A DNA stretch of 64,000 nucleotides from Paramoeba atlantica (lineage: Eukaryota > Protista > Discosea): NCBI GenBank assembly GCA_977017575.1, contig CDRNVI010000049.1, positions 434,001 to 498,000 of the forward strand, read 5' to 3'. The position numbers were made by a program, and so were the translations under genes. The notes under the pieces were generated by a model. The model made no database searches, was not told where the DNA came from, and was given only the letters and a program-made list of their open reading frames with translations. Positions within the stretch are counted from its first letter, which is position 1, and every line of letters begins with the position of its first letter. This document shows, one piece after another, positions 20,440 to 52,758 of this stretch.

Positions 20440-20491
20440 TAATAATAAAGTAATGTTATTTATGAATAATTACTCCCTATAAGATACCCGT

Positions 20492-22465: not shown

Positions 22466-23143
22466 ATGTCCGAAGGTCAGACCCCTAACGCCACCCTCAC
22501 CCAGCAGCTTTCTGAAAACACCTTGATGATGAAGAAAGTGGAGGAGCATTTAGACCGGGTACAAATCAACGAGGTGAGACTGGCGACCCTGGAAGGCGCG
22601 GTGGAGCGCGTGGCGGTTCAGACCACCGAAGCTATGAAGCTGGCGATGCGCCCGGTTTCGTCGGGTTCAGGGGGCGGCAGGGCGCCGGTTCGCCGGAGGT
22701 GTCAGAGGCAAGTTCCGCGCCCTTATGCGAAAACTCTGGTGCAGGTACCAGAGCTTCCTAGAGCTTCCGAAAGTTCACGGACACTCTCCTCAAGCTCTCC
22801 TCAAGTCGACCCCCCGTCTCCTCCAGTGTCTCCTCAAATCAGCCCTCCGTCTCCTCTGATGTCTCTTCAAGCCAACTCCCCAGCTTGTCGGGTGCAGAGC
22901 GGCTCGCCGAGATCATCACCTCTCCGTGCCGAAAAAACTTCGTCACGTATTCAGGCTCACACGCAAAATCCACAAGCGTTGTTTCACGCCGAGGAAAATC
23001 AAACGCAGTCGCCACAAACCTACTCTGCACCTCACGTGTTCTCCATACTCCACAATACGGCGAACCTATTCACGTGCTTCCGGGAGTATTACGGAAGTGA
23101 CGTAGATGATTTTAATGACCGTGTCAGTTTGCGCAGCTGTTAG
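22466..23143 (+). CDS. Element-associated ORF: coiled-coil N-terminus, Pro/Ser-rich middle, Merlin-like tail
   Basis: 225-aa ORF opposite the host strand. Its 3' segment TANLFTCFREYYGSDV is shared at DNA level with the Merlin remnant at ~21295..21345. Confidence 0.4.
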   Translation: MSEGQTPNATLTQQLSENTLMMKKVEEHLDRVQINEVRLATLEGAVERVAVQTTEAMKLAMRPVSSGSGGGRAPVRRRCQRQVPRPYAKTLVQVPELPRASESSRTLSSSSPQVDPPSPPVSPQISPPSPLMSLQANSPACRVQSGSPRSSPLRAEKTSSRIQAHTQNPQALFHAEENQTQSPQTYSAPHVFSILHNTANLFTCFREYYGSDVDDFNDRVSLRSC

Positions 23144-23805
23144 CAGTAGCTGTTAAAACATTTTTTATAAAGTGAGTTCCTAAAAAACGTATCCATCCAT
23201 TCACGAGTTGCGCGTGGAATTAGAACGATGTAGCATCCCGTCCATAGGAAAAGAAACGAAGAGAATCTAAGGGTAACAAAATGACAATGAAGAGAGGCCA
23301 GCACAGCTAAGTTCGTGATCTTCTAGCTACCAGCTTTCGTTGCGGAAAAATGTCTACATTTTTCTTTCACGAGCAACGAAACCAGTATCCTTATGCTGCC
23401 CCCACACGATCAGAGCAGTCAAAAAAAACAGAGCAGATGATTAATGAATTCTGTGACCAAAAGGTGCTATGATTCCTTCCAACAAGCTTGACATTCTTTG
23501 TCATACTACTTTTCCCAGTAAAGAGAACGTTCCTCCCGACTTCCATGCTATCTCCAAAAATAGGAGTACGTAAAGTTCAGTACATACTCCTAATTATGGT
23601 ACGAGCGAAGTTTCCTTCTCAAGCTACTCGATTTTGAATTCGTGTGCCTGTCCTAGACTCATCACTACGTAACGTTCTGGTTCATGTACGGGGACATATT
23701 GCGGTGTAAGATAGTTTCATTGGACACGCCCCCCAAGTGTACAAGGACAACATAAGAAATTTGAAGAATCGACTATGTGAACTTCTAAATACAGACCCCA
23801 CACTT

Positions 23806-24795
23806 TTACTCTGTACGTCCTACGGAACACGCACGAACACTCCGTGGTGGGATCCACACAGAGCCGTCTTTTTCCTGGGACACAAGTTCAAACACCAACA
23901 CCCCTCCATTCGAGAGCTTCCTCTCCGTCCAACACACCTTTCTCTGCTCCTTTAACGGAATAAACAAACGTAGCAACATTTTTAACCACGCGGAGTGTCC
24001 CGCAATGTAGACCACCTCACGGGGTTGGTCACACGAGAGCGCCCAATAGGCGAATCGACGGACCCGGGCCCACCCGGGTTCCGCTATTCCCTTATTCCCG
24101 GCGTGATACTTCATGTCCCACCCCCCCGCGTAGGAGAGAAAACCGAAAGGGTCGAACCCCAGCACTTTACGGTTCGTCGCGTGGGGTTGGGGTAAACGAA
24201 GTGTGGAGAAGGTGTCGATGTTTCGTGAGATTTCTTGTAAATCGGAGTGAATCCATATGGGCTGGTGATTCACTGGGTTCAGCGCGGTGAAACTGTACTG
24301 CGCGGTCTCCAGCGCCCGCTGTAGATTGGAGGAGAGAAGTAAATAGGAGTGGGAGTGGTGAAACCCGAGATGCTCGAGTTGGGCTCCCGCGGCTGTGGCT
24401 TGTTGTCGTCCGTGCGCACTCAGCGGGCTGTCTAAAAAGGCGCGAGGGATGACGGAGAGGATAATGCGTGCCGATTCTTGACAGGCGAATCGGAAGGCTC
24501 GAAATAAGGATACGGGATGAATCCGGTCAAAGCAGCTGTTCCAGATCGATTCACCATGGCGTATGAAGACAATCGTTACCGTTCGGCGGCGGTTTCCTCG
24601 CGGCGACCGCTTGCGAAGTTTGATGTCTTCAATGGGGGCAAATTCACGACAGTTTGTAAAATAGTGTGCCGCGTAAAAGTAGTGAGGTAAATCACGAAGG
24701 AAGCATGATTTGTGGTAATAGCACAGAAGGAGGGCTAAAGCAACGGCAAAAAATGCGCACCACGACACATAGAGGAAGTTCGATTCACCAGTCAT
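23806..24795 (-). CDS. Histidine phosphatase (phosphoglycerate-mutase-like) with N-terminal membrane anchor
   Basis: FIRHGES, DSPLSAHGRQQA, SSNLQRALETA and AGHS motifs. Confidence 0.85.
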   Translation of the reverse strand: MTGESNFLYVSWCAFFAVALALLLCYYHKSCFLRDLPHYFYAAHYFTNCREFAPIEDIKLRKRSPRGNRRRTVTIVFIRHGESIWNSCFDRIHPVSLFRAFRFACQESARIILSVIPRAFLDSPLSAHGRQQATAAGAQLEHLGFHHSHSYLLLSSNLQRALETAQYSFTALNPVNHQPIWIHSDLQEISRNIDTFSTLRLPQPHATNRKVLGFDPFGFLSYAGGWDMKYHAGNKGIAEPGWARVRRFAYWALSCDQPREVVYIAGHSAWLKMLLRLFIPLKEQRKVCWTERKLSNGGVLVFELVSQEKDGSVWIPPRSVRACSVGRTE

Positions 24796-24984
24796 TAGAT
24801 TTCGGAGCAGAATCCCACAAGGGGCTCAAAAATACGGCTGCATCATAAGTTTCTGAACCTTGCTTTACAGTAGAATGGTAGGAAATATAAAGTCCAAAAG
24901 TTTTGCAAAAAATATTGTTTTGCAAAGCTCTCCATGTACGTAAATTCTTATTATTTTGATTTTCCCGGCGGGTGTAGATTCATT

Positions 24985-26697
24985 TCATAAAGTCAAGTTT
25001 AGAATGCGATTCGTCGCTGAACGTTCCAGGGTCTCCTTGTTCAATTTTTTCCGGTATAATACGCTATAATGCCCTGTTGACTCCTCAAATGGAAAAAAGG
25101 TATGAAACCAACGTCCAACCTCGACATATTTATTGTCGTGCAGAAAATCCATCATTTTCATGCTCAAATCATCATAAAGAAGTACAAAATCTGGAAACGT
25201 TGCGGTACGATTTTCTCTCAATCGGACCAATTGGAGCTGCTGTTGTATGTGTTCATCGTTTGAACTAATATTAGCGTAATTCCACAACAAGAACTCTCTT
25301 GGGTATTTCATAAATATTGCGTGTGGGGTAGGAGGTTTCTCCTTCCCATTTTCCGAGAGATACAGCGGACACTGTATCGTATTCAACGTGTGGATCTTAC
25401 CATGAAGATGGGAATATCCCGGAGTTTGATGACATCCCATCCATATGTCAAGAGAAAGTCTCTCTTTGCCGTTTTGCGCCCCCCTCATGGTTTCAGGTAA
25501 TCCTCGTAGGTATGTAAAGGCTGCAAGGTTTCCTCTCTGATGTAAATAACCCAGTGTAACAAAGAGTCCCAAGTTCAATATGACATAGAGGGGAAGAGCG
25601 CCTCGGTGAATACATTTCGGTATCCATGGTTTACCTTTTTCACCGCATTCCATAAGCGAGATGGAACAAAGACTAATAGCAATCGGAAGAATTGGGTACA
25701 GAAAGCGAACCTCCTTGTGAGGAAGCAAGGAATAGGCTAAGATCGTCCATAACACGGACAACGATAAAATCGCTTTCTTGGATTGCAACCGCTGTCCTTC
25801 TGATAAACCAACCACAACACTTTGCAGTAAAATCGGATACAAGGGGCCCAGAAGTATAAACAGGCCGTGTGTGAGGTACCATGTAAAAGGGTGAGTGCCG
25901 AATATAGCCGATTGACCTTGGAACACATTAAAAAGAAGAAATTGGAGGGGAGTGCACGTGAGCTCACCGTAAAACAGTGAGTCTAACACGGTGAGTACTG
26001 CGAGGCAAACAAGACCAATAACAAAGGTACGGATGGCACGAGCTTTGGAGGATAACGTACATAAGCAAATTACAGGGATCCAGTACAGGATACTCGTTAC
26101 TCGGAGTGCAGTGGCAATTCCTACGGTGACGATGAAATGAAGAAAAGCAGAGTCTTTCTGAATGTACATGGCACTTTTAATTGTATGCTGACGAACGTTG
26201 AAAGAAATTTTGGTACAAAAAATTGCCGCCCAAGTGGTTAATAAGGCCTCTATGGAATTCACCAAAGTTCGGCAACCGTGAAATGGATGACTCCAAGTAA
26301 ACAACAGTAACTTAAGAGCAAGAGTTTTTGCTACTTTAACTTTTTTCATTGAGTGAATGTGCTCTGCATCCCGGCATTCTACGCGTGCCAATTCAGATGT
26401 TAGTTTTATTACCGCAACATCCAACAAAGCGCAAAATAAGCCTTGCAAAACGCGTGGCGAAAGAAACATTACCGTAGGTGTATCAATACCAAGCCCTCGA
26501 ATCACATAAAATAACAGACTATAAATTTGGGCGTGCAAGCAGGATCGTAAGCCGGTCTTCCATTCCCAAGTAAGATCCCCTTTACCATATACTTCAAAGT
26601 AGGCAACTTCAATGGATTGCCAGTACTCATCTGGTACGTAAGATGTTGCTATACTGCACGCAATGAAAACACGTAGTAATGCGAACAGAAGGAACAT
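24985..26697 (-). CDS. PIGB: GPI mannosyltransferase 3 (PIG-B/GPI10, GT22)
   Basis: PDEYWQSIEVAY, WEWKTGLRS, HKEVRFLYP, HQRG and CHQTPGYSHLH motifs; multiple TM segments. Confidence 0.9.
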   Translation of the reverse strand: MFLLFALLRVFIACSIATSYVPDEYWQSIEVAYFEVYGKGDLTWEWKTGLRSCLHAQIYSLLFYVIRGLGIDTPTVMFLSPRVLQGLFCALLDVAVIKLTSELARVECRDAEHIHSMKKVKVAKTLALKLLLFTWSHPFHGCRTLVNSIEALLTTWAAIFCTKISFNVRQHTIKSAMYIQKDSAFLHFIVTVGIATALRVTSILYWIPVICLCTLSSKARAIRTFVIGLVCLAVLTVLDSLFYGELTCTPLQFLLFNVFQGQSAIFGTHPFTWYLTHGLFILLGPLYPILLQSVVVGLSEGQRLQSKKAILSLSVLWTILAYSLLPHKEVRFLYPILPIAISLCSISLMECGEKGKPWIPKCIHRGALPLYVILNLGLFVTLGYLHQRGNLAAFTYLRGLPETMRGAQNGKERLSLDIWMGCHQTPGYSHLHGKIHTLNTIQCPLYLSENGKEKPPTPHAIFMKYPREFLLWNYANISSNDEHIQQQLQLVRLRENRTATFPDFVLLYDDLSMKMMDFLHDNKYVEVGRWFHTFFPFEESTGHYSVLYRKKLNKETLERSATNRILNLTL

Positions 26698-26903
26698 GAT
26701 ATAAGCTTGCCTTGGTCAGTTAATGTTGCTAGCTTGATTGGAACAAAATCTCTACTCGTTCACCAAAACATCTCAATCAATACTTGCGACTAAAATCCCT
26801 TGAGAGATTCTACTTAAACAGCTTCTACTTAAATAGCTTGTTACATTTGTAACAAATGATCGCAATGTAAATTTAATGAGCTTCACAAGATACAAAAGAG
26901 CTT

Positions 26904-26908
26904 AACGT

Positions 26909-26941
<33 letters not shown>
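26904..26941. repeat. (GA)n microsatellite
   Basis: Visible agagagag run. Confidence 0.85.
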
Positions 26942-26945
<4 letters not shown>

Positions 26946-27562
26946 ACGTATTCTTTTTTTAGATTTCAAAATTGAGACAGCCACATGCACTGGCTCGTTA
27001 ATCTAAGCTATTTAATTTAAGGAATCAAAAACCAAACTCGGAAAAAAGAAATTATAAAAAAAACTCGTAACTATTTAAGAAACAGTTCGCTAAAGAAACA
27101 AATTCACACTATTCTAGAATTTCTACACTACTAATTTATTTCTTTTAAATAAACATTTTTTTTCACACTACTATTTTATTATCAATCATTATTATATTGG
27201 TGCCTCCCACATAGGCTCTTAATGATTGAGGGTGAAGAGTCGTGTCGAATTCACCATACAAATCAGTATTACTATTTAAGTCAAGTCTACGCAGGTGTTT
27301 TGGAAGGAAATCAAACAACACCAGACCACTAAATAGGTTTATCTGACATTCGAAGGCGTGGAGAGATGGGGGTAGGTGCTGTAAGTCAAGTGGTCCAGTG
27401 AAAAAGTTTTGCGCTATATTTAGATTTTCCATTCTCCTCGGTAAGCGACTAAGGACAACCTCCCCAGAAAGCTCATTTGAATGAATATCTAAAAGTGTCA
27501 AAGTTGAAGGCAATTCGGAGAGATCCACGTTTTGAACGAATTTGTTACTGTTCAAAGGTTAT

Positions 27563-28010
27563 GATCATACGCTCGTGGCGCAGAGATACGTCTCTCTGTG
27601 TGACGGCCGATACCATCAGCGCATGACCCGCATACGACGGGTGTCACACAGAGAGTGGAGTGCGAGGTAGGAGACGAGTCGCCCATCGGTCATGCTACAG
27701 CACGTATAGCCATGGTTCATGCTGCAACACGGTCAAGCCGTGGGTTCATGCTGTCAGATGGTCTATCGTGGATCATGATGCATCATGGGGAGGTCCGTTA
27801 CCGCCGCACTCGCTACAGCATGTAGGGAGAGAGGGGTGCAAGTTCGCATCCCCTATACACGCATACAACGTGCCCTCCCGCTGTAGCACGCCCAGTGGTC
27901 CTCAAGGGAGGCCACCATGGCGCATAGCTCCCGGGAGAAGAAAGCACGAGAAGTAGAGAGCCGGGGAGGGAAGAAAGCTCACTCGAAGAGAGCGAGCCGG
28001 GGAGGGGTGA
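27563..28010 (-). repeat. SL-repeat family copy 3 (divergent, lacks SL-proximal part)
   Basis: Shares GCGCAGAGATAC, ACGCCCAGTGGTCCTCAAGGGAGGCCACCATGGCGCAT and GAGCCGGGGAGGGGTGA blocks with copy 2. Helices are conserved with different sequence. Confidence 0.78.
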
Positions 28011-28018
28011 AGAGTTTT

Positions 28019-28589
28019 GATGTTCATGCGCTCGTTGGCGCAGAGATACAGCCCTTGATGCGACAGCCGATATCATCGGCACAATCCGTATTGACGGATG
28101 TCGCACCAAGGGGGTTTAGCTCGGACTCTGTCGGTAGAGGGGGTCCAGGCAACTCGCCCTCTCTTTACGCAGCCGGAGGGGCGCACTGCAACCGACTCGG
28201 TCCCAGTCGGTAGAGGTGGTCCAGGCAACTCACCACCTCTTTGCGCAGCCGGAGGGGCGCACTGCAACCGACCGCTGCCTCGCGATAATGCGAGGCAGAG
28301 CCACGCCCAGTGGTCCTCAAGGGAGGCCACCATGGCGCATGGCTCCCCGGGAAGAAAAGGGCGCGAAGGGAAGAAAGCCGGGGAGGGAAGAAAACCCACT
28401 CAAGGAGTGAGCCGGGGAGGGGTGATGGGGTGGAAGCGCGTCCCCTACTTCGCCGAGAAAGAGGGACAGTTTCGGCCTTAGTGCCGGCCGGCAACGGGCA
28501 TATAAAACAGTAAGATTATGCCCGTTGCCGGGGAAAGAAAAGATGAACTAAAGGGAAAATGTACCAACAAGGTACAGAAACTGTATCTT
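28019..28589 (-). repeat. SL-repeat family copy 2 (SL nt 15-39 retained, internal ~75-bp duplication)
   Basis: Reverse complement reads AAGATACAGTTTCTGTACCTTGTTG|GTAC... and matches copy 1. Confidence 0.85.
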
Positions 28590-29262
28590 TATTGCGAAGT
28601 GCCACCATTGCGTCAGGTAAATGCGATAAATTCATTTTTCCTGACAGTTCGTTGCTAGATATGTCAATTGCCTTCATCTCGGATGGCAATACATCGAGTG
28701 GTACACTTCCGGTAAGTTCGTTTCGCCATGCCCTAAATTCGCGTGTTGTGTCGCATAAATATTTCCATTGCAAGGATCCCCCAAGTTTCCTGTAACTCCA
28801 ACGAATATACCTTACTTGTGAATTATAACAGCTCACGCCGGTCCAATCGCAAGCAGGTGTCGACGAAGTCCAGGATGGATCCCAATTTGAAATGTTCTCG
28901 ACAAATCGTACAAGTTCATATTCCTGCGGTAAGTTCGCTCCCCGAACTTTACTCGGACGGTTCCCTACTGCATTGTGCTTATAGTCATCCGCTGCGTCGC
29001 AACACGAGGACAAAAGACAGAGCGTCGAAAACATGACAGAAGACATATAAAAGACTACTAATAGGACGATCGTGTTTTTCCCTGTTGCATCAGCAACAGT
29101 AATGTTAAAATTCTTTTTTAGCCACTACGTTACACTCGGCGGTTGTCTTCAACTTAAAAGTCACTCATGCTGAGCATGGAGTAGCAAAAGTAGAAAACAA
29201 AAGTGTGGGCGGAGGGAAAAGTATAAACAGTGCCCACCACTGTATATAGCGTATATACACAT

Positions 29263-29331
29263 GAGGGGCTGCGGGTCGCGGGTTCGGCGCGGGTTCGGTG
29301 CGGGTTCGATGATGCATACCCGCAGCCCCTC
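29263..29331. mobile_element. Miniature TIR element (GAGGGGCTGCGGG ... CCCGCAGCCCCTC)
   Basis: 13-bp perfect inverted repeats, ACAT on both flanks, internal GCGGGTTCGG repeats. The same TIR occurs at 44530..44542 and, degenerate, near 30852. Confidence 0.65.
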
Positions 29332-29561
29332 ACATGTATAAAGCGTATTTATAATAATACATTAGAAAATACCTCCGTGATCATCCCAAAATTGAGATGA
29401 AAAAAGTCTAAAAAAATTCCTACAGAAAAAAAAATAACGTAATTCTCGTAAAAAAAAAGGATTGACACCATTATTTCTAAGAATCCAGCGGGGCCTCTAT
29501 TACCCACGAAGTATACATAGACACATGAAAACATGTTTACTTCCCCCGCAAAAAAATATTT

Positions 29562-29720
29562 CAAGATGGTGCCACCTCTCATATGGCCAAGGCCACCATA
29601 AATTACCTGAACAAACGAAAAATTAATCTACTAAAAAATTGGCCCCAAATTCTCCCGATCTTTCTCCCATTGAAAACATATGGTCAAAGGTGCAACAAGA
29701 CGTAAATGAAAAGCTACCAT
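29562..29720 (+). pseudogene. Tc1-like transposase fragment
   Basis: QDGATSHMAKAT...NSPDLSPIENIWSKVQ, related to the 45087..45857 transposase. Confidence 0.7.
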
Positions 29721-29745
29721 CTACAGTGCATCTAGCTACCATCTA

Positions 29746-30057
29746 CAGTGCGTGGTGTTATTATGGGACGGGTTAATTACGGGACGGGTTAATGACGGGA
29801 CGGGTATTTAAGGGACAATATGGGGGTGGGGTCGTACCTTTGAAATGGGACAAGAGAAAGGACAAATCCTTTTAGGATTTTAGGTTCTAAAACGTATTTA
29901 TAAGGTAAGATAATTAAAGGAAGATAATTGAAAGAAAAAGGTATAGTAGAGCCTCAGAAAAAAATGGAAAATTAAGGGACGGTTAAGTACGGGACACTTT
30001 GGCCTTGATGGGGCGGTGTCCCCTAATTAACCCGTCCCGTAATAAAGCCCCACACTG
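29746..30057. mobile_element. TA-flanked MITE (CAGTG...CACTG)
   Basis: TA target duplication, inverted ends with TTATTAYGGGACGGGTTAATT arms and GGGAC sub-repeats. Confidence 0.72.
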
Positions 30058-31248
30058 TACATCATATTACGGTATTCCTCCTTGTGTTTTAACTGTTTTT
30101 CTTCACTTATATTTCAATAAGCAGGGGTAGAGCGGTAGTTATATTGTATGCCTACAATGTATGTAATATGACTACTGTATGTAATAATACAACCTAAATA
30201 ACTGAATAATACAACCACCGCAACTTCCCTATTTCGCACCCTGGATTCAATTGGTAGTATTTTCCTACATGACTAATTAGTGTAGTAAAAATTTTTTGGT
30301 CGTTTCGTTAAACGACTTCTTTTCAAGCAGTCGCCGGTGCTGTGCAAGTGTAACAGTTTTCGTGCCCCCCCCCCAACTCCTTGTACATTTTTCATACAGG
30401 CTTGTGCTGCGACTTATGCAAGTTCGTCAAAGAACAAATGAAAGTAGACTTTTTATTGCAATTTTACTTACCGTCACCCCCCCTCACCTGTCCTCCTAGG
30501 TGACATATCCTCTTTGTACAATCGATGAGAGGATATGTCACCTAGTACCAAGATACGAAAGCGAGGACAAGTCAGGGGCAATGACGATACAAAGATCACT
30601 ATTTATTTAAGATTGATTATTTACATTCATTTCATTACTCAAATTAAGTTAAACGGGGATCCAGTTTAGCATACTTGTGACCTCGTATCATACCGGGGGG
30701 GGTATGGTATCACACTCGAAGTCCGTACTATGTGACTTGTCCTCCTAGGCATAGCTACAATAATAATTTTTGTAATAATAATTATTAATAATTATTATTA
30801 TTCAAAAAATCAAATTATTAATATTATTAATAATTCAATATGCATTCACACGAGGGGCTGCGAGTGACACATGAGGAGCCCCTCGCATGTAGACATATGG
30901 TCGGCGTCATTTGCAGCAGTATGATGGCAGCACCAGGGAAGACCGCGAGGAGATCCAGAAAGCTCATTCTCGTTGCGACACATCATACAAATACAGAGTT
31001 TGGCATTTCCCGGCCCTCGATATCAGCACTCCACAAGGAGTTGTTGTTGGTACAGCACATTTACCTGCGTCAGGCGTAGGCTCCTACTTCCCGCGTAGGT
31101 TGAGGTGCATATAATGATGCTCGAAGCATCAGCATCGACTCCATAAGGAGATCCCCATCAATGGTCCTTTTCGGCATGAAAATATTGTTTGACACAAAAT
31201 TAAGGGCGAGAAATCTGAGTGTAAAAGCCCAATAATAATTTATTAATA

Positions 31249-31807
31249 CTGTGCCCCCCCCACTTATTTGTCACCCCTTTTTCGAAAAAAGGACAAATAA
31301 GTAGGGGGGATGGAGCTATCACAATTAAGTGGGGGGGTCACAGTTCTTGCATACTTCAAAAATATCTGCTTACGAATGTTCTTAGGTCAGCGTTAGTACC
31401 ATCAGTAAGATAGCAGTGCCAGGGAAGACCACGAGGAGGTCCCGACCTTACTTCCCCATTTTGGGTTGCGCCCAGAAGCAAGCCCACTTTAATTTTGCAA
31501 TAGTCAAAACTTTGCGATAGAGAAAAAAGGTTATGGTAGTAGTATCATACATGAAGCGAGTACGGTACTCGTGTACTCACCCGAGTAAGCACAGCGAGTA
31601 ATTACTCGGAGTACCGTACTCGCTGTACTCGCTTCCAGCAGGTATGCACTCGCTATACAAGTGAGTTTGGAACAAGTGACGTTATGTTAAGAAATTTCTG
31701 GTCGAGAAATTGCTGGTCGAGGAGGATGTGGGATGTGATAAGGGATGGAATGCGGCGCCGAATCCACTAGGCTTCGTCGAAAAGGACAAATAAGTGGGGG
31801 GGCACAG
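31249..31807. mobile_element. TA-flanked MITE (CTGTGCCCCCCCACTTATTTGTC TIR)
   Basis: ~23-bp inverted repeat at both ends in AT-rich flanks; related motifs near 15690 and 52830..52930. Confidence 0.7.
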
Positions 31808-31941: not shown

Positions 31942-33387
31942 CAGGGGGGTAAATCAGATGCTGCGGGGGGTCTAAAAATTGCAAAACCCTTCAAATTTTG
32001 GAAAATGATAGCGCATTCGAGAGCTCTCGCAGAGTTCTATGTTTTTGCGCTATTTTCACCCCAAAAGAAAGCAATTTTGTTTATGGCATTTTTTAAAAAG
32101 TTTTTTTGTCCCTCTAAAATTTGCAGTTTTTCCCAAATTTTCTCATTTTTTTCGTTTTTTCTCCATTTCGTCTCAGTTTTATGCCGCGAAAGCGATCCCG
32201 TTCTATGCAGAACAAAAGATTTCTCTCCGATAGGGCGTACTCCTCCCCTGGGCACACCAAATATTCACATAGGATGCTTCTTGTAAAAGATTACGAGAAT
32301 ACAAATTCCTATGGTGCCACTTGCCGAAGAGAAGGCGTCCACCACAGCACTGTCAAGTTGTGGGTGAAACGCTTTGAGGAAACCGGGGACGTTGAACGTT
32401 CCACACCCCCTCGCGAACGCACTGTGGCGACACCCGGGCTTCTTGATGCGTGCCACGAGATTATTGACACGGCCAACACGTCAAGCACACGCGGTTGTCC
32501 CTCCTGGAATTTTATACTTCGAGAGGTCAGGAAACGAGGTTTCACCTGCAGCAGGCCAACTGTAGTAAATTTTTTGAAGGACGCAGGGATAATCCAACGT
32601 TCTTTTTCGAAAGGCCTTTTTTTAACTGAATCTCATAAGGCCAAGCGACTAACCTTTGCATTGAAAATGCAGAAGTGGTCTGTCGCACAGCTTCGTCACA
32701 TTATTTGGTGTGACGAAAAAAATTCACTTGCCAGCTTGGACAGGAAAGCCGCTCGTACATTTGCAGAGCAAGTGACCCCCCGAAACCACCTCTAAAAGCT
32801 TCGCAAAAGTGGTTTGGGGGGGATGGAGTAAACGTTTGGATGGGTTTCTTAAAGTTTCTTAAAGCGTCATAGCGGGGCCCGGGTTGCTATGGATAATGCT
32901 CCTTGCCACAATGGCAGTTTTAGAACCTTTAAAGAAAACGAAGTCGTTGTTTTGGACTTTCCCCCAAAATCCCCAGATCTTAACCCCATTGAAAACATTT
33001 GGGAAATTATGGATGCCTTTATTAAAAATGGTACAAACCCAGAAAATAGGACTGAACTCTTGTTTTCTATTGAAAGAGCGGTTGATTACATTAAAACAGA
33101 TGGTCATGACATGCTCATTAACACTTTAAAAAGCATGCCGCGGCGTTTCGACATAGTAGTAGAAAAAAAAGGAGAAAGTTGTAATTATTAGTCGTCTAAA
33201 ACCTTTCTCATTTTTGCATTTTGACGTTTTTGGGCTTCTTGTCAGTTGAACACCCCCCTATACCCCGGGAAACTGCCTTTTCTAAAACATAGAACTCTTC
33301 GAGAGCTCTCGAATACGCTATCATTTTCCAAAATTGGAAAGGTTTTGCAATTTTTAGACCCCCCGCAGCATCTGATTTACCCCCCTG
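31942..33387 (+). mobile_element. Tc1/IS630-like element, ~105-bp TIRs, TA TSD, defective DD32E transposase (~32183..33191)
   Basis: TA-CAGGGG...CCCCTG-TA ends; HTH (TVKLWVKRFEETG), CDEK, MDNAPCH and SPDLNPIENIW motifs; internal deletion relative to 60859..62406. Confidence 0.92.
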
Positions 33388-38448: not shown

Positions 38449-39165
38449 CTACACGATCAACTCCCCTCTCACCTCCATCCCCCACACCTCCCTCACCGAC
38501 GTCTCAAACTCCGGATCATCACAAATCCCCGGTCGGAACGGTACTCTCCCCCCACCCCTTCCCCTCCCCCCTTTCTCCCCCCCCTCCCCCTCCCCTTTTC
38601 TCCTAAAATACACCACCTCCACCACCCTCACCCCCACCACCTCCCCCACCACGACCCTACGACCCCCTTCCCCCCACCCCCCTTCCCTCCCCCCTCCGTC
38701 ACTCGTGTCTCCCCCTCCCCCCTCCCCCCACCACCACCCTCGCGGCAGCCCCCCCCTCTTCACCACCATCCGCACCGGGGCCGTCTTCCCCCCCCCTCCC
38801 CCCGCCCACCCCCCGGGCACCAGCCTCAGCCCCCCCCCGGGGGACTGCCCCGCGACCACCCCCGAGAGCGCGGCCCCGGGGGCGGGGGCGAAGGCCGCGA
38901 GGAGGAACCGCACCGCCGTCCACGCCCCCCCGCCGGTGGGGGTCACGTGCGGGGGGCCGGCCCCGGTGACACGGGGCACCGCGAGCACGAGACCGAGGGA
39001 AGGAACGACGGTGCCGCAGTAGCGCCGGGTGAGGGCGTCCAGCAGGGCCGCGGTGGGGAGGGGGGAGGGGGCGTCAGGGGGGGAGGGGGCGTCAGGGGGG
39101 GAGGGGGGGGTGAAATGGGGGGGGAGGGTACAGACGACGTCGCGCATGGGGTGGAGGAGGAACAT
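38449..39165 (-). CDS. RPC25: RNA polymerase III subunit RPC25/RPC8 (RPB7 family)
   Basis: MFLL..MRDVV..LPPHF, L...Y.G.VVPSLGL.LAV, G.GGAWTAVRF..AAFAP..G..L.GVV. Very GC-rich. Confidence 0.78.
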   Translation of the reverse strand: MFLLHPMRDVVCTLPPHFTPPSPPDAPSPPDAPSPLPTAALLDALTRRYCGTVVPSLGLVLAVPRVTGAGPPHVTPTGGGAWTAVRFLLAAFAPAPGAALSGVVAGQSPGGGLRLVPGGWAGGGGGKTAPVRMVVKRGGLPRGWWWGEGGGGDTSDGGGREGGWGEGGRRVVVGEVVGVRVVEVVYFRRKGEGEGGEKGGRGRGGGRVPFRPGICDDPEFETSVREVWGMEVRGELIV

Positions 39166-40286
39166 TTTTTTGTGGCGTGTCGGGGGGGGGCGGTGTAATA
39201 AAAGGGGGTGGAAAAGGGTAAAAAGAGGGTTGTTAGTGGAGGGGAGAGGATGGAAAAGGAAAGCAAAGGATGAAGAGGAAGTGTGTAGATTGATAAAAAT
39301 AGATTGAAATACCCTCGAAGGACTTACCGTTACCCCCGCTTACTTAGTCCCCACTTTTTGGGCCAAAACCCGTACTTTGTGGTGAAGTAAGGGGGGTGGT
39401 GAGGTAAGGGGGGTGAAGAAGTGATTCAAAGTTCGATCAAATTATAGTTCTCTCGGAAATCCTCAAATTATTGAAGTACACTATGCTATTGGCATTGAGC
39501 ATAATTTCCTTTTCCTGAGTGTTGTAATACCTCGTGTTGCACATTCTATATTTTATGTCTCTTTTAGCTTGTCTACGATGTCCCATGCGTTTTTAACTTT
39601 CCCCTCATGAACATTTCTTACATCGTAAAATTTAAATGATGTCGCAGAACATAAACTATTGAACACTTATTTAAATTTTAGAACTACAAGAACTGTGGCG
39701 CAACTTTATGACCAAAGCGATGATGAAACTGACATGGAAGAAAACCGTTCTGAATTAGAAATGGGGAACGAATCTAAGAGGGGTGACTCCTGCCCGGGCG
39801 CTCCCAGGCGCTCCCAGTAAACTTCTACGGAGATCCGACTTGGTAAAATGATTTTTTCTCAAAGAGGTCCGGAATCCTCAATGTCCCTTGGATGGAACAT
39901 GCTGGGCTAACATGACAAAGAGTTAGAAAGGGAGACTGGCGTTGGGCTGTCGTTGGTGATGGGGCGTGGCGACCCTAGCCTTCCGAAGTAAGGACTTCCA
40001 GCTAGCTGCAGGGATTTGTCTATTCCTATTCCGGTTTAACCCCTTCGGGGTTGCAAGACGGCGTGGCATGTCCATCTCCGGGAATACGTTGTTAGCACCA
40101 CCTTTTCTCGCGTGCCAACCTTGTAACCTCGGTGGAGGTGGGACTGCACTCGTGCAAGCTGTGGTCGAATCCCACCCCATCTCCGGAGGAGTGGAGGCGC
40201 AAAAAACTTCGTTTCTCCAGCCAGGACCGTCCCGGACCAACAATCTGGGATAGTGGAGTTTTAGCGGGTGAGCTAGCAGAGTCGGC

Positions 40287-40637
40287 ACACGCACCCTTAT
40301 AACGCATAAAACTCGCACCCTTATAATGCATAATGTAACCTGATGACGCATATTGTACCCTTGATAACGCATATTGTGCCCTTGATAACGCATAAAACTC
40401 GCACCCTTATAATGCATAGTAACTCGCACCCTTATAATGCATAATGTAACCTGATAATGCATAATGTAACCCGATAACGCATAATGTAACCTCATAACGC
40501 ATAATGTAACCTGATAACGCATAATGTAACCTGATAATGCATAATGTAACCCGATAACGCATAATGTAACCTCATAACGTATAATGTAACCTGATAACGC
40601 ATAATGTAACCTGATAATGCATAATGTAACCGGATAA
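40287..40637. repeat. Left arm minisatellite (20-bp ataatgtaacctgataa(c/t)gc and actcgcacccttataa(c/t)gc units)
   Basis: Directly visible tandem array; its outer part is inverted relative to 42375..42551. Confidence 0.9.
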
Positions 40638-40661
40638 TATTTTTTTTGTCTTTCTTGCACC

Positions 40662-41651
40662 ATGTGTCAAACATCTAGAAAACGTATTAATTCAGAAGAT
40701 CGTAAACTTATTGAGGTTCTCCACAATCAAGAAAATTTTTCGCAAGCACAAATTGCCTCAAAACTGAAAGTAAATCAGTCGTCTCTTAGTCAAGAACTGG
40801 CACGTGGAGATCGGGATGGTGTGTACAACGCGAAGCGGGCTGAACGAACACTCAACCAAGCAATGAGTAAACGGAAGTCCCGTGCAAGCAAAATTGAAGG
40901 AGACATCAAAGAGAGTGTCATATCTCTGTTACGTCGGCGCTTTAGCCCTCAACAGATATCTGTTACTTTGCGCAAAGAAGGTGTGAGCATTTCCCGGAAG
41001 GCAATTTATGGTTTTATTAGTCGGAATAAGAGTCAAAACTTGGAGAGTTGCCTCCGCCGGGGGGGAATTCGTGGACAACGCCGTCGTCGTGGAACTAATC
41101 GTACCAGCATCCCTAATCGTACAGATATTGATATGCGGCCCAGCATTGTTAACGATCGGGAACGATACAGTGATTGGGAGTGTGATCTAATAGAAGGTAC
41201 ACGCCACAGTGGATACTTTCTTACCCTGGTTGAGCGCAAAAGTCGTTTCGGGATCCTGAAAAAGATATCATGCAAGAAATCGACTCTTGTAGCAGAGACT
41301 ATCACCAGCGCCCTTCAAGGCTTTTTGGTACGGACACTCACATGTGATAATGGAACGGAATTCGCGAAGCACGAGAGCGTAAATCGTTCCCTTAATTGCT
41401 CGTCGTACTTTTGTAAACCGTACGCGAGCTGGGAAAAGGGTGGTGTCGAAATTTTCAACGGCGTCGTCAGAGATTTCTACCCAAAGTCTCATCCTTTCAG
41501 TAATATATCCCAAGCAGACCTTGATTCCGTATCCAGCAATATCAATGCTCGACCGAAAGTGGTGCTCCAAGACCAGTCCCCATCTGAGTTTGTGCAAAAA
41601 TTACGGAAAATTCGACTGCAAATTATCTTGGACAGCTCGCAGGAATCTTAA
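40662..41651 (+). CDS. IS30-family DDE transposase, uninterrupted (329 aa)
   Basis: N-terminal HTH (SQAQIASKLKVNQSSLSQELAR), FSPQQI, WECDLIEG, LVERKSRF, LTCDNGTEF and YFCKPYASWEKGGVE; 33 residues between the second D and E. Confidence 0.93.
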   Translation: MCQTSRKRINSEDRKLIEVLHNQENFSQAQIASKLKVNQSSLSQELARGDRDGVYNAKRAERTLNQAMSKRKSRASKIEGDIKESVISLLRRRFSPQQISVTLRKEGVSISRKAIYGFISRNKSQNLESCLRRGGIRGQRRRRGTNRTSIPNRTDIDMRPSIVNDRERYSDWECDLIEGTRHSGYFLTLVERKSRFGILKKISCKKSTLVAETITSALQGFLVRTLTCDNGTEFAKHESVNRSLNCSSYFCKPYASWEKGGVEIFNGVVRDFYPKSHPFSNISQADLDSVSSNINARPKVVLQDQSPSEFVQKLRKIRLQIILDSSQES

Positions 41652-42374
41652 ATCTCTTTTCGTGTGCGTGGGCTTCTTCCTTCAAATATTGTGTCATAAA
41701 ACACTAATTTCCTATGAAACTGCGCGGGCCTTGTTTGCATTGGATATTTGCATTTCGTGTGCGTTCTTGCATTGAATGTCGTTTTCTTTACGTGTATGGG
41801 CTTCAAAAGGTCTTGGCTTTATTACGGGTTGGATATGGTGGAAAAGTTGGGCTCCGTCAGAAACGTTGGGCTTCAGTCGCCTTGGCTTTGTAAGGGATTG
41901 GGTATGATGGAAAAATTGGGCTACGCAAATTGCTTCCCACTAACGACACACATTTTTGTCTTGCAGACGAGGTAAACAAAGTCTTGGCTTTTCTAGGGGT
42001 CGGGTATGATGGAACAGTTGGGCTTCGCAAATTGCTTCCCACTAACGTCAGACTCAGTGGCCCGGCCGGCCCCTCCGTGCGTTCGGCCTCTCATATTCCC
42101 CAAAACAACTACCACCTTCCCACCATTTATCAGGGGTCGCTCGCGCGACCCACGCTAAATAGGGGGGGGGGAGGTGGTAGTTGTGGGGTATGGAGGCCTC
42201 TCGCAACTCCGGGGCCTCACCGGGAGCAGGAATGAAATACTAGAGCTCTTTAACTTGTTTCTCCCCTCCACTTTTTTTCTTTTTAACTTATTTCCCCCCC
42301 TCCACTTTTTTTTCATGGGGTCGATTTCTTTTTCGAGGGGGGGTCACTTTTTTTTTGAGGGGCTCGCAAAAAAT

Positions 42375-42551
42375 ATGCATTATAAAGGTGCGAGTTTTAT
42401 GCGTTATAAGGGTGCGAGGTTTTATGCATTATCAGTGGGACAATATGCATTATCAGTGGGACAATATGCATTATCAGTGGGACAATATGCGTTATCAGGG
42501 TGCATTATGCATTATAAGGGTGCGAGTTTTATGCGTTATAAAGGTGCGAGT
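42375..42551. repeat. Right arm minisatellite
   Basis: atgcattataa(a/g)ggtgcgagttttatgcg and atgcattatcagtgggacaat units, reverse-complementary to the left arm. Confidence 0.88.
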
Positions 42552-43289
42552 GGCGTCCCTGACGCAGTACGATACTACAACGCTCTGCTCATTCGACCAA
42601 GAAAAGCCCACCGGTTGGACGGTGCTAACGTTAGGTGTATTGCAATGGTTGTTTAACTACCGCTGTACCCTCGATTATTAAAAAAAGTGAACAAATTTTC
42701 CACCCCCACGTGGGGGTGACCCCCCCTGGTATCCGCAGGATGGGTCCGCCAAGTTCGGAATTTTCACGAAAAAAAAGTTGGAAAAAATTCTAGGCGGGAT
42801 CCTAGGCGCTCCCACCCAGAGTCACCCCTCTAAGCACAATGTATTATTAACGTGTATTACATGCCGAAACCCTCGTTTAAGTCCTGCAGAATAACAATTC
42901 CAGTAACATGATTTCTGTATCTTCCGATTGAAGCAAAAAATATTAAGAAGCTAAGGAAGAAAAAATTGACGAAAGATAAACTCCGGATTGCTCCGATGGG
43001 TCACTGGCAAGCCAGACCCTTCACAGATAGATATGGAAGTTTCGAGGCCGAAGTCCTCTACCTGTTTTCGTTAGTACAAGGCGGCAACAACGTGCTACCA
43101 CCAACCCGTTGCGTCGACGAACCCAAGACAATCTTCAAACGTTATCATTCCTGCAGCTACGTAGTATTCCTGTAGCCGTTAACATTCCCCCCCGGAATGT
43201 TAAACCGGACTGTGGTTTAAAATCCCGGTATGACGGCGTCGTCTTCACCAAGAAAATTGCACCCAGAACCTTTGTGCATCGTTCTTTGT

Positions 43290-43409
43290 GCGCCATCTGT
43301 GTCCCCCCTTGAAGACCACTGGGCGTGGCTCTGCCTCGCCTTACCCCGATGCAACGGTCGGTTGCAGTGCACCCCTCCGGCTGCATAAAGAGGTGGTAAG
43401 TTGCCTGGG
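43290..43409 (+). repeat. SL-repeat family copy 4 (internal fragment)
   Basis: cccttgaagaccactgggcgtggctctgcctcg...cccctccggctgc.taaagag...agttgcctggg matches the middle of copy 1. Confidence 0.75.
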
Positions 43410-44917: not shown

Positions 44918-46288
44918 GTATATTAAATTATAAACCCCCGCTCACGAAAAGTGACCCCCCTCTTTTTTTTTCGTACAAATGTCCGTTTGAGCTGATTTTT
45001 GTTGCATTTTGCAGATCTCAACACAAGGACTTTGCGCGTGAAAAAATGGGACAAAAAGAAACGAATACGCACAATTTAGAGAAGAATTACCATTTTGTCA
45101 CTTTTTCGCCCTCCAATCTTATACACTCCTTAAGTCGAGAATCAAAACTTAATACTGTTTTGTCGATCACTTTTTGCGTTAAAGAAGACCATGCTTTACG
45201 TACACATCGGATAAGTGAAGGTTTGTCCGATGGCGTTTGTTCGTCTACCGCTTCTTGGACCATAGACCAGACGTTTTCTATTGGGGAAAGGTCGGGCGAG
45301 TTGGGGGACCAGTTTCTTAAAACATCACTCATTCGATTCTCAATATACTCTTTGGAGGCACGGGCAGTATGTGCCGTTGCCCCATCCTGTTGAAATACAC
45401 TATTAGGGGGGAAATCTACCTGTTTTAATGTTTCTATGTACGTCTCACTTGTAATAGATGTGTCATTTCGTAGAGTAACCAAATACCTCCAGCCCACTCC
45501 TACAGCACCCCAAACTTGGCATCTTGGTGCCCAACGTACTTTTTGACGCGGGGCTGCTTTTTGACCGCGCTTTACCCACATGTGTCTTCTGCTATCGTTG
45601 GTATCAAATATCTTTTCGTCCGTAAAAATAACACGGGCAGTATCCAATTTGTAATTCAAAGCAAATTGAACTATTCTTTGCTTTTGTCGTTCGGTAAGCC
45701 CTTGGCATACTGGCCGAGCGGCATAATTGTAATCCAGCGATGGTAGATCTCGCTTTACAGTGCTTTGCGAAACTTTTATACCTTTTTTACACATTTGGCC
45801 GTTTATACGCCTTGAAGAATTGAATTTTGGTACCCCAGCGGGGTCGAGAGGAGCCAATATCTTTTCAATTTTCTTTTTGCGAGATTCGATTTTTATTAAT
45901 GGTCACAGGACTCAAAGTGTTCCCCACTACATTTTTTTTCGTTCAGATATTTTTTGGTTATCCTTCTAGAGACGTTAAAATCACGGGATAATTGTTTTAT
46001 CGGAACACCTTCTCCCTGTCTCATCTTCAGAAGAACCTTGCCACTATCCGTAAGCTCCCCTTTTGGGAGCTGATATGGTGATTTGGTCATTTTTGGAAAA
46101 AAAAGTTGAAAAACCAATTATTTTTTTTGACTAAATTTTAAAGTATTAAAATGAGCTGAAAACAGCGGGAACGTACAGATCTCGAAATTTTGAACGAAAA
46201 AGTGGTATGATAACCCACCCACGCCCCCCTGTGCTAAAAATAAGGGGGAGTCACTTATTCGTGAGCGGGGGTTTATTTTAAATATACT
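44918..46288 (-). mobile_element. Tc1-like element with DD35E transposase (45087..45857 plus upstream HTH frame 45896..46117)
   Basis: TAAACCCCCGCTCACGAA.AGTGAC inverted ends; FTDEKIF, QVWGAVG, FQQDGATAH and SPDLSPIENVW motifs. Exact termini approximate. Confidence 0.85.
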
Positions 46289-49329: not shown

Positions 49330-52300
49330 TCCGCGACAGACTTGCTGTTGGCGTGAAGAAACATTTGCATTGAAACGTTTCCGGGTCATGGACGCTTGCC
49401 TAGAATTGTACTTGTGTGTCATCATTGAAAGCACAGAATCACAATATGTGACAACCGGCGGGACAAACAGATAATGTTGCGCAAGAGGGTAGACTTCCGG
49501 AAAATCGTAGCGCCCTACTTTCTCCCACCATTCAATGTCCGTACAAGCTCCTCCAGGCCACTTTTAATTTTCGTGTGTCACATAAGTTTCCCATGCCGCC
49601 TCTGTGCAGTGAAACATGGGCGCATTATTCTTTAGAAGATCGTTTGCTCGAGCACAAGTGATCGGCGCATAATTTTGCGTTCGTGTCGTCCATATGATGA
49701 ATGTAGGGCTTAGCCAACGAACGTCTTTCCAAAATGGAGTTGCGTGATTTTTGTTGAGACGACTCTCGTGGTGCTGGAGAGCAGCGGCGAGTGGAGGATT
49801 TGAAGGCCCTTCCTTACGAAGCATACTAAGTGTGCTTTCAACACACGTCGCAATGGCGACGTTGTTCTCGTCAGAAAAGAGATTTGGGGAAGTACGCAGA
49901 GGTTCCAATCGCTTTAAAAAAGCCTTCCCCTCAGACATGATTGCGTCAACTGCGCCAGGAACTTTGAGAATGTCATAGCATGAGCATATGGACGCAGGAG
50001 GAATGGGTGTAGGTTTGCTAACTATGTGGGTTACAAATTTAGCAATTGTTGGCAATTCTGTTGATATATACTCAACCCACGTGAATTTATCCGCTATCCA
50101 GCGCGTGACACCACCAAGTTTAGGTGTCGTACGTACGCGTTCACGCTTAGCTTCCTCTTGCAATTTTTGTGCCATGGGGATAACTCTGGAAAGAGAAGTT
50201 AGGGCATTCCGCAAGGTCGCGAGTGCTTGTTCCTTTGAAGTCTCGTCCAATTGCTTTGATCCAAGTATTCCATACCACTGGAACAAGGTTTCTTCGGCGG
50301 ACTGCGAAGTTTCGTCAAACTCAGTAAGTCGAACTTCAAGAGCAACACCAGCATACTCCGCTCGTCGAGTTCCTTGACCATGAAATGCTTGAGTGTAGTA
50401 CTTTCGTAGCTGGACAAGAAGAATATCTTCATAATCCTTGGATGCGTCTTTCGCAACGTTGTTGAGAAGATGCCCAATGCACGGAATTAGGACAATGTGG
50501 GGATGTGAAGCCTGGAAATTTGTCACAAAGTCATTCCAATCTGCAGCTCCAAGAGGAACAATGCTCTCAAATACTTTTAGTAACACACCACTCGCTTCAT
50601 AGCGAGACCAACATGGTTCACAGCTACATGGTTCACTGCGCATCCATCGACTATGAGATACGCCAGTTTGGATAGACGAGCTCCTTCCAGACAGTGTTGC
50701 AATTCACGTATAACAATTTCGGCGGTATCCTTACCACTGAAAGCGCCATACTTCGGGTGATGCATCGGTGGCATGAGCCATTGATGATGTCCCACATAGA
50801 GAACCGCTACAAGAACATGTTCGCGGAGTACAGGGTCGATGTCTGCATCAATTGCTAGACCAAAAAATGCATACTCGTCAACAGTACGTCTTATTCGTCC
50901 CCAGAGTTGTTCCGCTAGGTATTGCACGTCTGCTTTGAGCACACGGGCGTCTTTCTGAAGAACTTGAATAGCTGTCTCAGTGGACATAACGGGTCGGTGC
51001 TGCTCATACAGGGGTGAAAACTTCCATCTGGGGGGGTCTAAAATTTGTAAAAACTTTTCAATTTTGTAAAATAATAGCGCATTCGAGAGCTCTCGCAGAG
51101 TTGTATGTCTTCGTACTGGTAGCTTTTAACATATCAAAGTAGAACTACAAATGCCGAATAGGTCAAAAACTCGAATTGTCACTTGAAAAATGATACAAAA
51201 AAGTTGAAAAGTAACGTTTTCTCCCCCCAAAAAGATTGTTAGTAACCCCTGTTAGTATCCGCAATGTGCACCGTTCTTTTCTACAATGATTCTACAACGC
51301 TTTCTGAAGCTTTTTAGCGTATTCTCAAATTTGGATATTTGTTCCGTCTTAAGTTTATCATAGGAATCATGAATTGCGGAGAGTAATTGTTGTTGATTTT
51401 TGGGTTGAATTTGGTCCTTTGTCCCGTCCATTATTGACCAAAGATTTTCTATGGGGTTTAGATCAGGGGATCGTGCTGGCCATCGGAGCCAAGAATAACC
51501 CTTTTCTTGGGCCGCGGCACGAGCCTTATTATGTGCCGGGCAATTGTCCATCACTATTGTGGCCCGATGTCTCCTTAAATATTGGAACAGACCCCCCCCT
51601 TTTTTTCATGGCTTCATAAAAAATTTGTCCCTTTACAGTTACTTTGTTTCCTTGAGAATCATGGGTAGGAAAGACGTGTAAATGAAACCCATGCTTTAAG
51701 CTCACCCCATCCAAACCATAATACCTTCTCCACCATGATAGGGTTCTAATTCCCCTGTTTGTTCTTTGGGGGGGGTCAGATTTTCGGCAAAGGTACGTGG
51801 GTCGGGTGGATCTTTTGCACGTAAATTTTTTTTCGTCGCAGAAAATAATATTTCCCAGCGCAGCGTCGCTCCACTGTAGCATTTCAGTGGCAAATTGCAC
51901 TCTGCGCTCCTTATGATTATTAGATAAGAAAGGGGTCTTTAAAGCTGTTCTGAGCACAATTTTTTCTTTTGAGTTTTTCAACATGTTCCTTAGGGATGTT
52001 AGTGAACATATGAAGCCACGTCGCTTTACCTCTCTCCAGAGCTCGCTCCAAGTGGAGATACCATAAGGAAGGTCACGATAAGCGTCATCAATAAGCTTTA
52101 AAGATACTTTCATAAGATCAGAGGTGGTGACCCTAGGTTGGCGCGTAGGGGATGGACTGGCCACGTCGCCAGTGCAATTAAATCTTTCCACCCAGAGTTT
52201 CACAGTTCCCTCGTGGACACCAAAATTTTGGGCAGTCCGGGAATAAGACTCTGTTTTCTCAAAGTCCGCCACAAGAAGCATCCTGTGACTTTCCTTAATC

Positions 52301-52758
52301 TTCCCTGGTGAGGCATAGGAGCGTGCTCTCAAAACACCACGGGAAGTCCATGAGCGAACTCGCTTTTGAGGCATAAAATGGGGAAAAACAAAAAATTGCC
52401 ATACTTTCACAAGAAAAAAAAATTATTTTTTTGTCATTAGATTAAATCTTTCAAGTCGAGCGTTCCGAATACGCCAAAGACATACAACTCTGCGAGAGCT
52501 CTCCAAAGCGCTATTATTTTACAAAATTGAGCAAATTTTACAAATTTTAGACCCCCCCAGATGGAAGTTTTCACCCCTGTATGTTTTGATAAATTTCAAG
52601 AACGAAGATACGGGGAAGGAAGTAGTTGAGAAAAGCAGAGGAAGTACCACATGTGCAAATATTTCCGGTGTCCCCGAATTAGTGTCCACTGTCCCAATGT
52701 TATTATCGAGAGGAGGTGGTGGTGGTGGTGGACGACACCACTTTTGATGATTGCTCAA
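49330..52758 (-). pseudogene. hAT-superfamily transposase interrupted by a Tc1-like insertion
   Basis: GLAID, LIVDGCAVN, CIGHLLNNV, GVTRW and a C-terminal WW..R segment. Removing 51009..52579 and one TA joins ...FLKFIKT-Y-EQHRPVMSTET in frame. Confidence 0.78.
51009..52579 (-). mobile_element. Tc1/IS630-like element, ~100-bp TIRs, TA TSD, DD32E transposase (~52377 to 51252)
   Basis: TA-CAGGGG...CCCCTG-TA ends; CDEKKF, GGEGIMVWMG, MDNCPAH and SPDLNPIENLW motifs; three frameshifts, all in C/G homopolymer runs. Confidence 0.92.

Follow-up and report, generated by a model that had tools for sequence, protein, structure and literature searches.

Results and discussion

We analysed a 64,000-nucleotide stretch of DNA from Paramoeba atlantica (assembly GCA_977017575.1, contig CDRNVI010000049.1, positions 434,001 to 498,000; hereafter the window) and found at 40284-42554 an element of 2271 bp that is very probably a full-length copy of a multi-copy nuclear transposon family, descended from the bacterial IS30 insertion sequences (ISs) and resident in a euglenozoan protist. 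The hallmarks of a resident family were found together, namely several loci, defined ends with target-site duplications, diverged subfamilies, deletion joints, and arm and module sequences whose depth exceeds that of the coding region. The transposase clearly belongs to a known family; what is new is its host, the remodelled ends, a conserved 3' module and the proliferation of the element.

The transposase

The element carries, on the plus strand at 40662-41651, an open reading frame (ORF) of 329 aa with zero internal stops, as had been recognised in an earlier reading made without database searches (the sequence-only reading). Its product matches the NCBIfam IS30 equivalog NF033563 with 233.6 bits (E 3e-69; cut-off 80 bits) over profile positions 1-266 of 267. 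Pfam matches to HTH_38, HTH_32 and rve were all weaker than this; for the helix-turn-helix (HTH) region they were weak, with PF13936 (HTH_38) covering residues 5-49 at 25.1 bits (E 1.5e-5), slightly below its gathering score of 27, and PF13565 reaching 30.1 bits against a gathering score of 33.7. When the protein is aligned with its relatives, the D-D33-E signature already noticed in the sequence falls on D175, D229 and E263, the latter two separated by 33 residues. These columns are invariant or near-invariant, and other family-invariant residues are kept too. A C-terminal tail, ...L-x-DSSQES, is common to the eukaryote-resident relatives and has no counterpart in the aligned bacterial ones; in the window copy it ends ...LDSSQES. 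A sequence search of the Protein Data Bank (PDB) returned no solved structure of any IS30-family transposase.

Every one of the best homologues of this protein (54-97% identity) is found on a long contig of the European Nucleotide Archive (ENA) assembly ERZ24900291, which comes from the same species: its L008 contig encodes an identical mannosyltransferase and is 96-99% identical to window 17284-31354. The comparisons below cover at least nine loci on eight contigs of that assembly, plus the window, and seven further ENA proteins fall into the same clade. One of these loci, L002, places an element between a PIG-P gene and a gene of the HSP90 family (GRP94-like), with a kinesin gene ~1 kb further upstream. 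The best named relatives of the GRP94-like protein are those of Bodo saltans, Trypanosoma, Leishmania, Perkinsela and Diplonema (~45-50% identity), and further relatives occur in EukProt transcriptomes read as Hemistasia, Euglena and Trypanoplasma. On the strength of these named relatives the host nucleus is read as that of a euglenozoan with no close relative among the named genomes. GC content and third-position GC content (GC3) of the ORFs are within the host range and do not discriminate.

The ATG of the window ORF is preceded by a pyrimidine tract and then GCACC; the sequence-only reading had seen no Shine-Dalgarno (SD)-like motif here, and indeed no purine-rich motif of that kind is present. 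A pyrimidine tract also stands upstream of the ATG at L001, L002 and L005. We infer a putative role as trans-splicing signal; in the window copy there is no AG between the tract (40640-40661 region) and the ATG.

Ends and target-site duplications

The element is flanked by a 3-bp duplication, GTC, at 40281-40283 and 42555-42557. In contigs of public runs X1 and X3 a joint runs directly from 40280 to 42555, skipping 2274 bases; three letters at the joint can be assigned to either side, and this is the signature of an empty site holding one GTC. A sister copy at another locus of the second assembly (L089:3583-5909) is 93.7% identical, its alignment stops at exactly 40284 and 42554, and it is bordered on both sides by ATT. 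The right end at L004 likewise reads ...GAGTGGC before its flank diverges. Because the empty-site joint, the homology limits at L089 and the right end at L004 agree, we place the ends at 40284 and 42554 and take GTC as the duplication. The unit had previously been drawn as 40287-42551 (2265 bp) with a GGC duplication; the true ends lie 3 bp further out on each side, and GGC is the outermost sequence of the element itself at both ends.

An element of a different subfamily, L002:4715-6804, is bordered by GGT, so duplications were identified at three copies (GTC in the window, ATT at L089 and GGT at L002), all in non-bacterial flanks. The ends at L005 are compatible with a GGG duplication but lie inside a G-run. 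IS30-family enzymes generate 3-bp target duplications. The repeat surrounding the window element is itself multi-copy; it showed no clear terminal inverted repeats, and none of the loci examined spanned its own empty site.

We also observed that the L002 element occupies the loop of a small palindromic repeat (CCCCCGTTTAAGCGCAC ... GTGCGCTTAAACGAGGGGG) at L002:4590-4714 and 6805-6825. Bacterial IS30 prefers palindromic hot spots as targets, and the L002 insertion may reflect a retained target preference.

Arms and shared layout

The anatomy of the window copy is as follows (window coordinates, strand, feature, basis).

40281-40283, unstranded: left target-site duplication GTC (empty-site joint, runs X1 and X3)
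40284-40309, plus: left terminal inverted repeat, starting GGCACACGCACCCTTAT... (homology limit at L089, shared motif)
40284-40637, plus: left arm of ~17 tandem 20-24-bp units, four of the terminal type CGCACCCTTATAAYGCAT and the others of the GATAAYGCATAAT type (repeat analysis)
40640-40661, plus: pyrimidine tract and GCACC (directly 5' of the ATG, no SD-like motif)
40662-41651, plus: IS30-family DDE transposase ORF, 329 aa (NCBIfam match, alignment, clade-specific tail)
41807-42053, plus: internal repeats of ~70-100 bp, three units each ending ...GGGCTTCGCAAATTGCTTCCCACTAACG... (high copy in the genome)
42054-42230, plus: conserved ~180-nt module, an imperfect palindrome (identity across subfamilies, fold z-scores)
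42249-42362, plus: T-run/G-run short repeats between module and right arm (same place in L005 and L004)
42374-42554, minus: right arm of ~8 tandem 21-24-bp units, inverted, ending in the right terminal repeat ...GGTGCGAGTGGC (right end shared by L004 and L089)
42555-42557, unstranded: right target-site duplication GTC (empty-site joint, sequence)

The inverted arms built from tandem repeats that had been described from the sequence are borne out. The longest inverted match, 40277-40394 against 42444-42561, is 118 nt long and 86% complementary; a 20-bp array at 40319-40637 (15.4 copies) forms the left arm, and an array at 42374-42551, with units of 21-24 bp, the right one. The 26-nt terminal inverted repeat agrees with the reverse-complemented right end at 23 positions and forms the outermost unit of these 181-354-bp tandem arrays. 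A terminal motif, G-S-CAC-N-CGCAC, is common to the window copy, L005, L001 and L002, and in a scan of the window it occurs once per strand, at the two ends of the element.

The subfamilies share one layout: a terminus with this motif, 8 to >20 units of ~20 bp, the pyrimidine tract, the ORF, a variable spacer, internal repeats of ~70-100 bp, the ~180-nt palindromic module, T-run/G-run repeats, a shorter inverted array and the right terminus. Sizes are 2271 bp in the window, 2327 bp at L089, 2090 bp at L002 and ~2.5 kb at L005; the window element thus departs from the compact IS30 format of ~1.0-1.25 kb, with an ORF nearly filling the element and single 20-40-bp inverted repeats (IRs). From one transposase subfamily to the next, the sequence of the arm units changes too, whereas the outermost termini with their CGCAC motif stay conserved. 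An enzyme and the sites it binds would be expected to show such a pattern, which argues against arms taken from an unrelated element. The arm units are presumed to be multiple putative transposase-binding sites.

Phylogeny and selection

A maximum-likelihood tree was built from 119 sequences; the ten that reside in the eukaryote group together in one clade with a Shimodaira-Hasegawa-like approximate likelihood-ratio test (SH-aLRT) support of 100 and a stem of 0.55. This clade is sister to 72 IS30s (support for the union 96), and 37 more distant IS30s fall outside. The sister clade includes a sequence from a Verrucomicrobiota genome (P0020, on the same contig as L009). With one genome per prokaryotic species, the nearest loci belong to Verrucomicrobiota, Akkermansiaceae, Puniceicoccaceae, Verrucomicrobiaceae and Pirellulales at 38-46% identity; the nearest named IS on plasmids is of the IS4351 type at 35%. 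When 1.84 billion cluster representatives were scanned exhaustively with HMMER, no sequence beyond the eukaryote-resident clade exceeded 46% identity. L016, a bacterial sister, has the classic IS format of 1075 bp with 41-nt inverted repeats (98%), and this compact form with short IRs indicates that the long arms of the eukaryote-resident elements are derived.

The family is split into at least five subfamilies. Between them the proportion of synonymous differences (pS) is 0.83-0.91, i.e., saturated, and that of nonsynonymous differences (pN) is 0.20-0.33; for the closest subfamily pair, the window copy and L001, the ratio of nonsynonymous to synonymous rates (dN/dS) is 0.08. The transposases have long been kept under purifying selection. 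We infer the root of the tree and the direction of transfer, and the most economical reading would be a single acquisition from a bacterium followed by diversification in the host lineage. The proposal that an IS30 lineage has colonised this nuclear genome is thus upheld by diverged subfamilies near eukaryotic genes, by duplications at three copies and by the separate clade.

Many copies are decayed: L002 has a premature stop, L004 has deletions and a simple-repeat replacement, and P0003 carries E263K. Such decay is the pattern of a transposon family; a domesticated gene would not show it. Within 3.6 kb, a tail-to-tail pair of IS30-type copies from different subfamilies lies at L004:3285-4793 and, on the minus strand, L004:5432-6918. 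The first of these is 96% identical to the window copy and has lost its left arm; a (CAT)n run replaces the end of its ORF, and the second half of the module follows that run immediately.

Palindromic module and probable derivatives without an ORF

The module at 42054-42230 folds as one long hairpin with z-scores of -6.2 (DNA) and -6.3 (RNA) relative to shuffled sequences. Its counterparts at L002:6350-6530, L005:6930-7127 and L001:6330-6535 are 96%, 89% and 80% identical to that of the window, whereas the transposases of the same copies are only 56-74% identical to the window protein, with synonymous sites at or near saturation. The module is therefore not neutrally evolving orthologous DNA; either it is constrained, or recombination homogenises it, or it has been picked up again and again from a high-copy repeat. 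Module copies are almost invariant, leaving no covariation to analyse. Rfam, searched permissively on 39500-43300 and at the gathering score on the window and seven loci, gave sub-threshold matches of miRNA-like hairpins on the module and no family, and an exact-pattern scan of metagenome contigs of the Joint Genome Institute (JGI) did not find the module. At L007 and in the minus-strand copy at L004, one half of the palindrome looks flipped or truncated.

Summed word depth from contigs, which is not copy number, was ~17,000 and 8,700 for the module in two runs, ~700-1,700 for the arms, 100-200 for the ORF and ~10-16 for adjacent single-copy DNA (38887-39260). On this measure the module stands ~100x above the ORF, and the internal repeats at 41807-42053 reach ~10,000 compared with ~150 for the ORF. 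Deletion joints tie the left array straight to the 3' region (40492 to 42002, 40515 to 42002 and 40549 to 41705), which suggests that derivatives without an ORF exist.

Alternative explanations

That the protein unmistakably belongs to a bacterial IS family, and that its exact window sequence has no record in the public gene index, would fit a bacterial IS30 mis-joined into a eukaryotic contig by contamination or chimeric assembly. We consider this extremely improbable. Nine related loci lie among eukaryotic genes and transposable elements on eight contigs of the second assembly, three of the copies have precise ends and 3-bp duplications in non-bacterial flanks, and the architecture is unlike that of bacterial IS30. 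Across the left junction, a contig of run X4 (39956-40313) matches the window with zero mismatches, although it passes the junction by only 30 nt. The element is also not a single copy nearly identical to a bacterial IS, given at least nine loci and a best bacterial match of only 38-46% identity, and the sequence-only reading was right to set simple contamination aside. Hardly more probable is a composite in which the arms, module and ends come from an unrelated eukaryotic transposon with another enzyme, the IS30 ORF being a captured passenger or domesticated gene. Arms and 3' module are far commoner than the ORF, the module is much better conserved, and tandem-repeat arms are typical of some eukaryotic elements. 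Yet the 3-bp duplication fits what is generally known of IS30 enzymes, the arm units track the transposase subfamily over conserved extreme termini, the position and orientation of the ORF relative to the arms are identical in all copies, and the stop at L002, the deletions at L004 and E263K in P0003 are unlike the fate of a domesticated host gene.

An ancient eukaryotic superfamily related to IS30, inherited vertically with no horizontal acquisition, would account for the long stem branch (0.55), the deep divergence within the clade with its saturated synonymous sites, the clade's own C-terminal tail and architecture, and its position as sister to, and not nested in, the Verrucomicrobiota-type clade. 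We nevertheless regard it as unlikely. The scan of 1.84 billion cluster representatives brought up no other eukaryotic member, and IS607 was the sole IS group detected when 430 eukaryote genomes were surveyed (PMC3673617). The clade lies within the overall diversity of bacterial IS30, with the 37 more distant bacterial sequences outside it, and its 38-46% identity to its bacterial sisters exceeds the identity of those sisters to many other bacterial IS30s.

Several observations weigh against a mobile family acquired from bacteria, which we nonetheless favour. The contigs with the empty-site joint more likely represent paralogues of the multi-copy repeat around the element than an allele, and the joint listing gives 'between: not known' for the joint from 40280 to 42555. 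Among the joints listed in the public-run contigs, none connects the right end to the left end as a circle (IR-IR) junction would; IS30 elements transpose by copy-out-paste-in through such joined-IR circles or dimers. The only RNA-labelled run of the species, X5, contains nothing of the stretch and gives no transcript support. The closest full-length copies are ~6% apart, so recent movement is not demonstrated, and the depth excess of arms and module is subject to the limit on summed word depth given above. All copies examined come from the assembly of one species, so that the bacterium-to-eukaryote direction follows from the shape of an unrooted tree and from absence elsewhere. Finally, the transposase had been called intact, which holds for the open frame and does not imply activity: although it is 97% identical to the intact sister protein P0278, the window copy alone carries, relative to P0278, three substitutions (G170S, Y228C and N264I) at conserved positions flanking the catalytic residues. 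Because of these, the window copy may be catalytically impaired despite its open frame; if so, sister copies such as the one that encodes P0278 could still mobilise it.

Proposed mechanism

Under the favoured reading of an IS30-descended transposon family, a bacterium, perhaps one taken as prey, would have supplied the ancestor in a single event, after which the element adapted. Its originally short inverted repeat would have multiplied into arrays of 20-24-bp units bearing the terminal motif, and these arrays would serve as multiple sites bound by the N-terminal helix-turn-helix of the transposase. The enzyme would cut at the G-S-CAC-N-CGCAC termini and integrate with a 3-bp stagger. Internally deleted derivatives without an ORF, which keep the arms and the 3' region, may be mobilised in trans, and such derivatives would account for arms and module outnumbering the ORF. 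The palindromic module could be kept in every subfamily by acting in cis or by recombinational homogenisation.

A stronger version is tentative and in our view rather doubtful: that IS30 founded a true and still-active eukaryotic superfamily in Euglenozoa by way of multimerised arm sites and an obligatory cis-acting hairpin module. If true, the hairpin may be a recombination or replication hairpin, a signal for expression or processing, or a source of small RNA, and thousands of hairpin-bearing derivatives would shape the host genome.

Genomic surroundings

The window contains genes for a 2125-aa DDX60-like helicase, a GPI mannosyltransferase, a histidine phosphatase and a UDP-glucose dehydrogenase, together with Tc1-like transposase and reverse-transcriptase ORFs. 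The helicase, on the minus strand at 757-7134, combines a DDX60-type PIN-like N-terminal domain with DEAD and Helicase_C domains, an architecture of the innate-immunity type. A second ORF of 329 aa, at 23806-24795, was considered as another transposase and rejected; it is the histidine phosphatase. Two ORFs neighbouring the transposase, like the transposase itself, had no exact protein match in the public gene index. The IS30-type element sits in a transposon-rich stretch of the window, with Tc1/mariner-type ORFs (HTH_Tnp_Tc3_2, DDE_3) and a reverse-transcriptase fragment at 32121-32795, 45087-45857, 51529-52410, 61502-62272 and 62475-63155. The segment 38449-39307 is GC-rich and of low complexity, with overlapping proline- and glycine-rich ORFs on both strands, and is probably non-coding. 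A scan of the window for tRNAs found none, leaving the tRNA-like look of the left flank unsupported.

To the right of the element, high-copy repeats at 42627-42813 and 43001-43187 reach a summed word depth of ~20,000. The piece 42639-42695 recurs at L004 (three times), L005 and L007, and the L005 element adjoins the same repeat family. Collinearity of the L008 contig with the window stops at 31354, and the 5.8 kb of L008:1-5785 have no counterpart in the window. Beyond 31354 the window is rich in transposon ORFs, possibly a haplotype- or strain-specific block.

Comparison with known elements

With bacterial IS30 the window family shares the HTH and D-D-33-E signature, a strong match to the family profile, a single ORF, the 3-bp duplication and inverted termini that start with a G-rich/CAC-type sequence. 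It differs in residing in a eukaryote nucleus and in its size of 2.1-2.5 kb vs. ~1.05-1.25 kb, in arms of 180-400 bp built from 20-24-bp units where bacterial elements have single IRs of 20-40 nt, and in ~900 bp of 3' non-coding DNA with internal repeats and the palindromic module. It further has a pyrimidine tract in place of an SD motif, an additional C-terminal tail and probably plentiful derivatives without an ORF.

Foldback and Galileo elements have long, unequal inverted arms of short tandem subrepeats and target duplications of ~7-9 bp. The sequence-only reading had called the arms of the window element Foldback/Galileo-like, and as an analogy of arm architecture (repeat-built and unequal, as those elements are generally described) the comparison stands. 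It does not extend further: the transposase is unrelated to theirs, and transposase, terminal motif and duplication (3 bp vs. ~7-9 bp) are of the IS30 type, so the family does not qualify as Foldback.

Transfers of bacterial IS families into eukaryotic nuclear DNA, with intact copies present, are known for IS607 and an IS5-like element. IS607-like elements have been transferred into amoebae, fungi and stramenopiles (Gilbert and Cordaux 2013, PMC3673617); that study looked for all major IS groups in 430 eukaryote genomes and detected IS607 alone, in cases that have few copies and were judged recent or domesticated (PMC3673617). A later broad survey of eukaryotic DDE transposons cites only the IS607 transfer and one IS5-like transfer, in a bdelloid rotifer (bioRxiv 10.1101/2021.09.26.461848). 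IS607 uses a serine recombinase, whereas the IS30 enzyme studied here is of the DDE type, and the window family differs further in its old subfamilies, remodelled ends and abundant derivatives. IS3EU, ISL2EU, Merlin/IS1016 and Tc1-mariner/IS630 are likewise eukaryotic cut-and-paste families with bacterial IS counterparts. These IS-named superfamilies are ancient, widespread and only distantly like their IS counterparts (bioRxiv 10.1101/2021.09.26.461848), whereas the window clade shares 38-46% identity with IS30s of living bacteria and is known from one species so far. Our full-text searches returned, in the papers they covered, no account of an IS30-type element in any eukaryote; the sequence-only reading had likewise known of no recognised eukaryotic IS30 superfamily.

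Significance

Bacterial insertion sequences are thought almost never to settle in eukaryotic nuclei. Here a DDE IS family without a known eukaryotic branch would have crossed that barrier, persisted, split into subfamilies, rebuilt its ends and spawned derivatives, providing a natural example of a prokaryotic transposon adapting to the nucleus. The compact, single-protein transposase with defined ends makes the system experimentally tractable, and the unexplained, highly conserved hairpin module is worth study in its own right. For the annotation of repeats in euglenozoan genomes, the family is a candidate new eukaryotic transposon superfamily.

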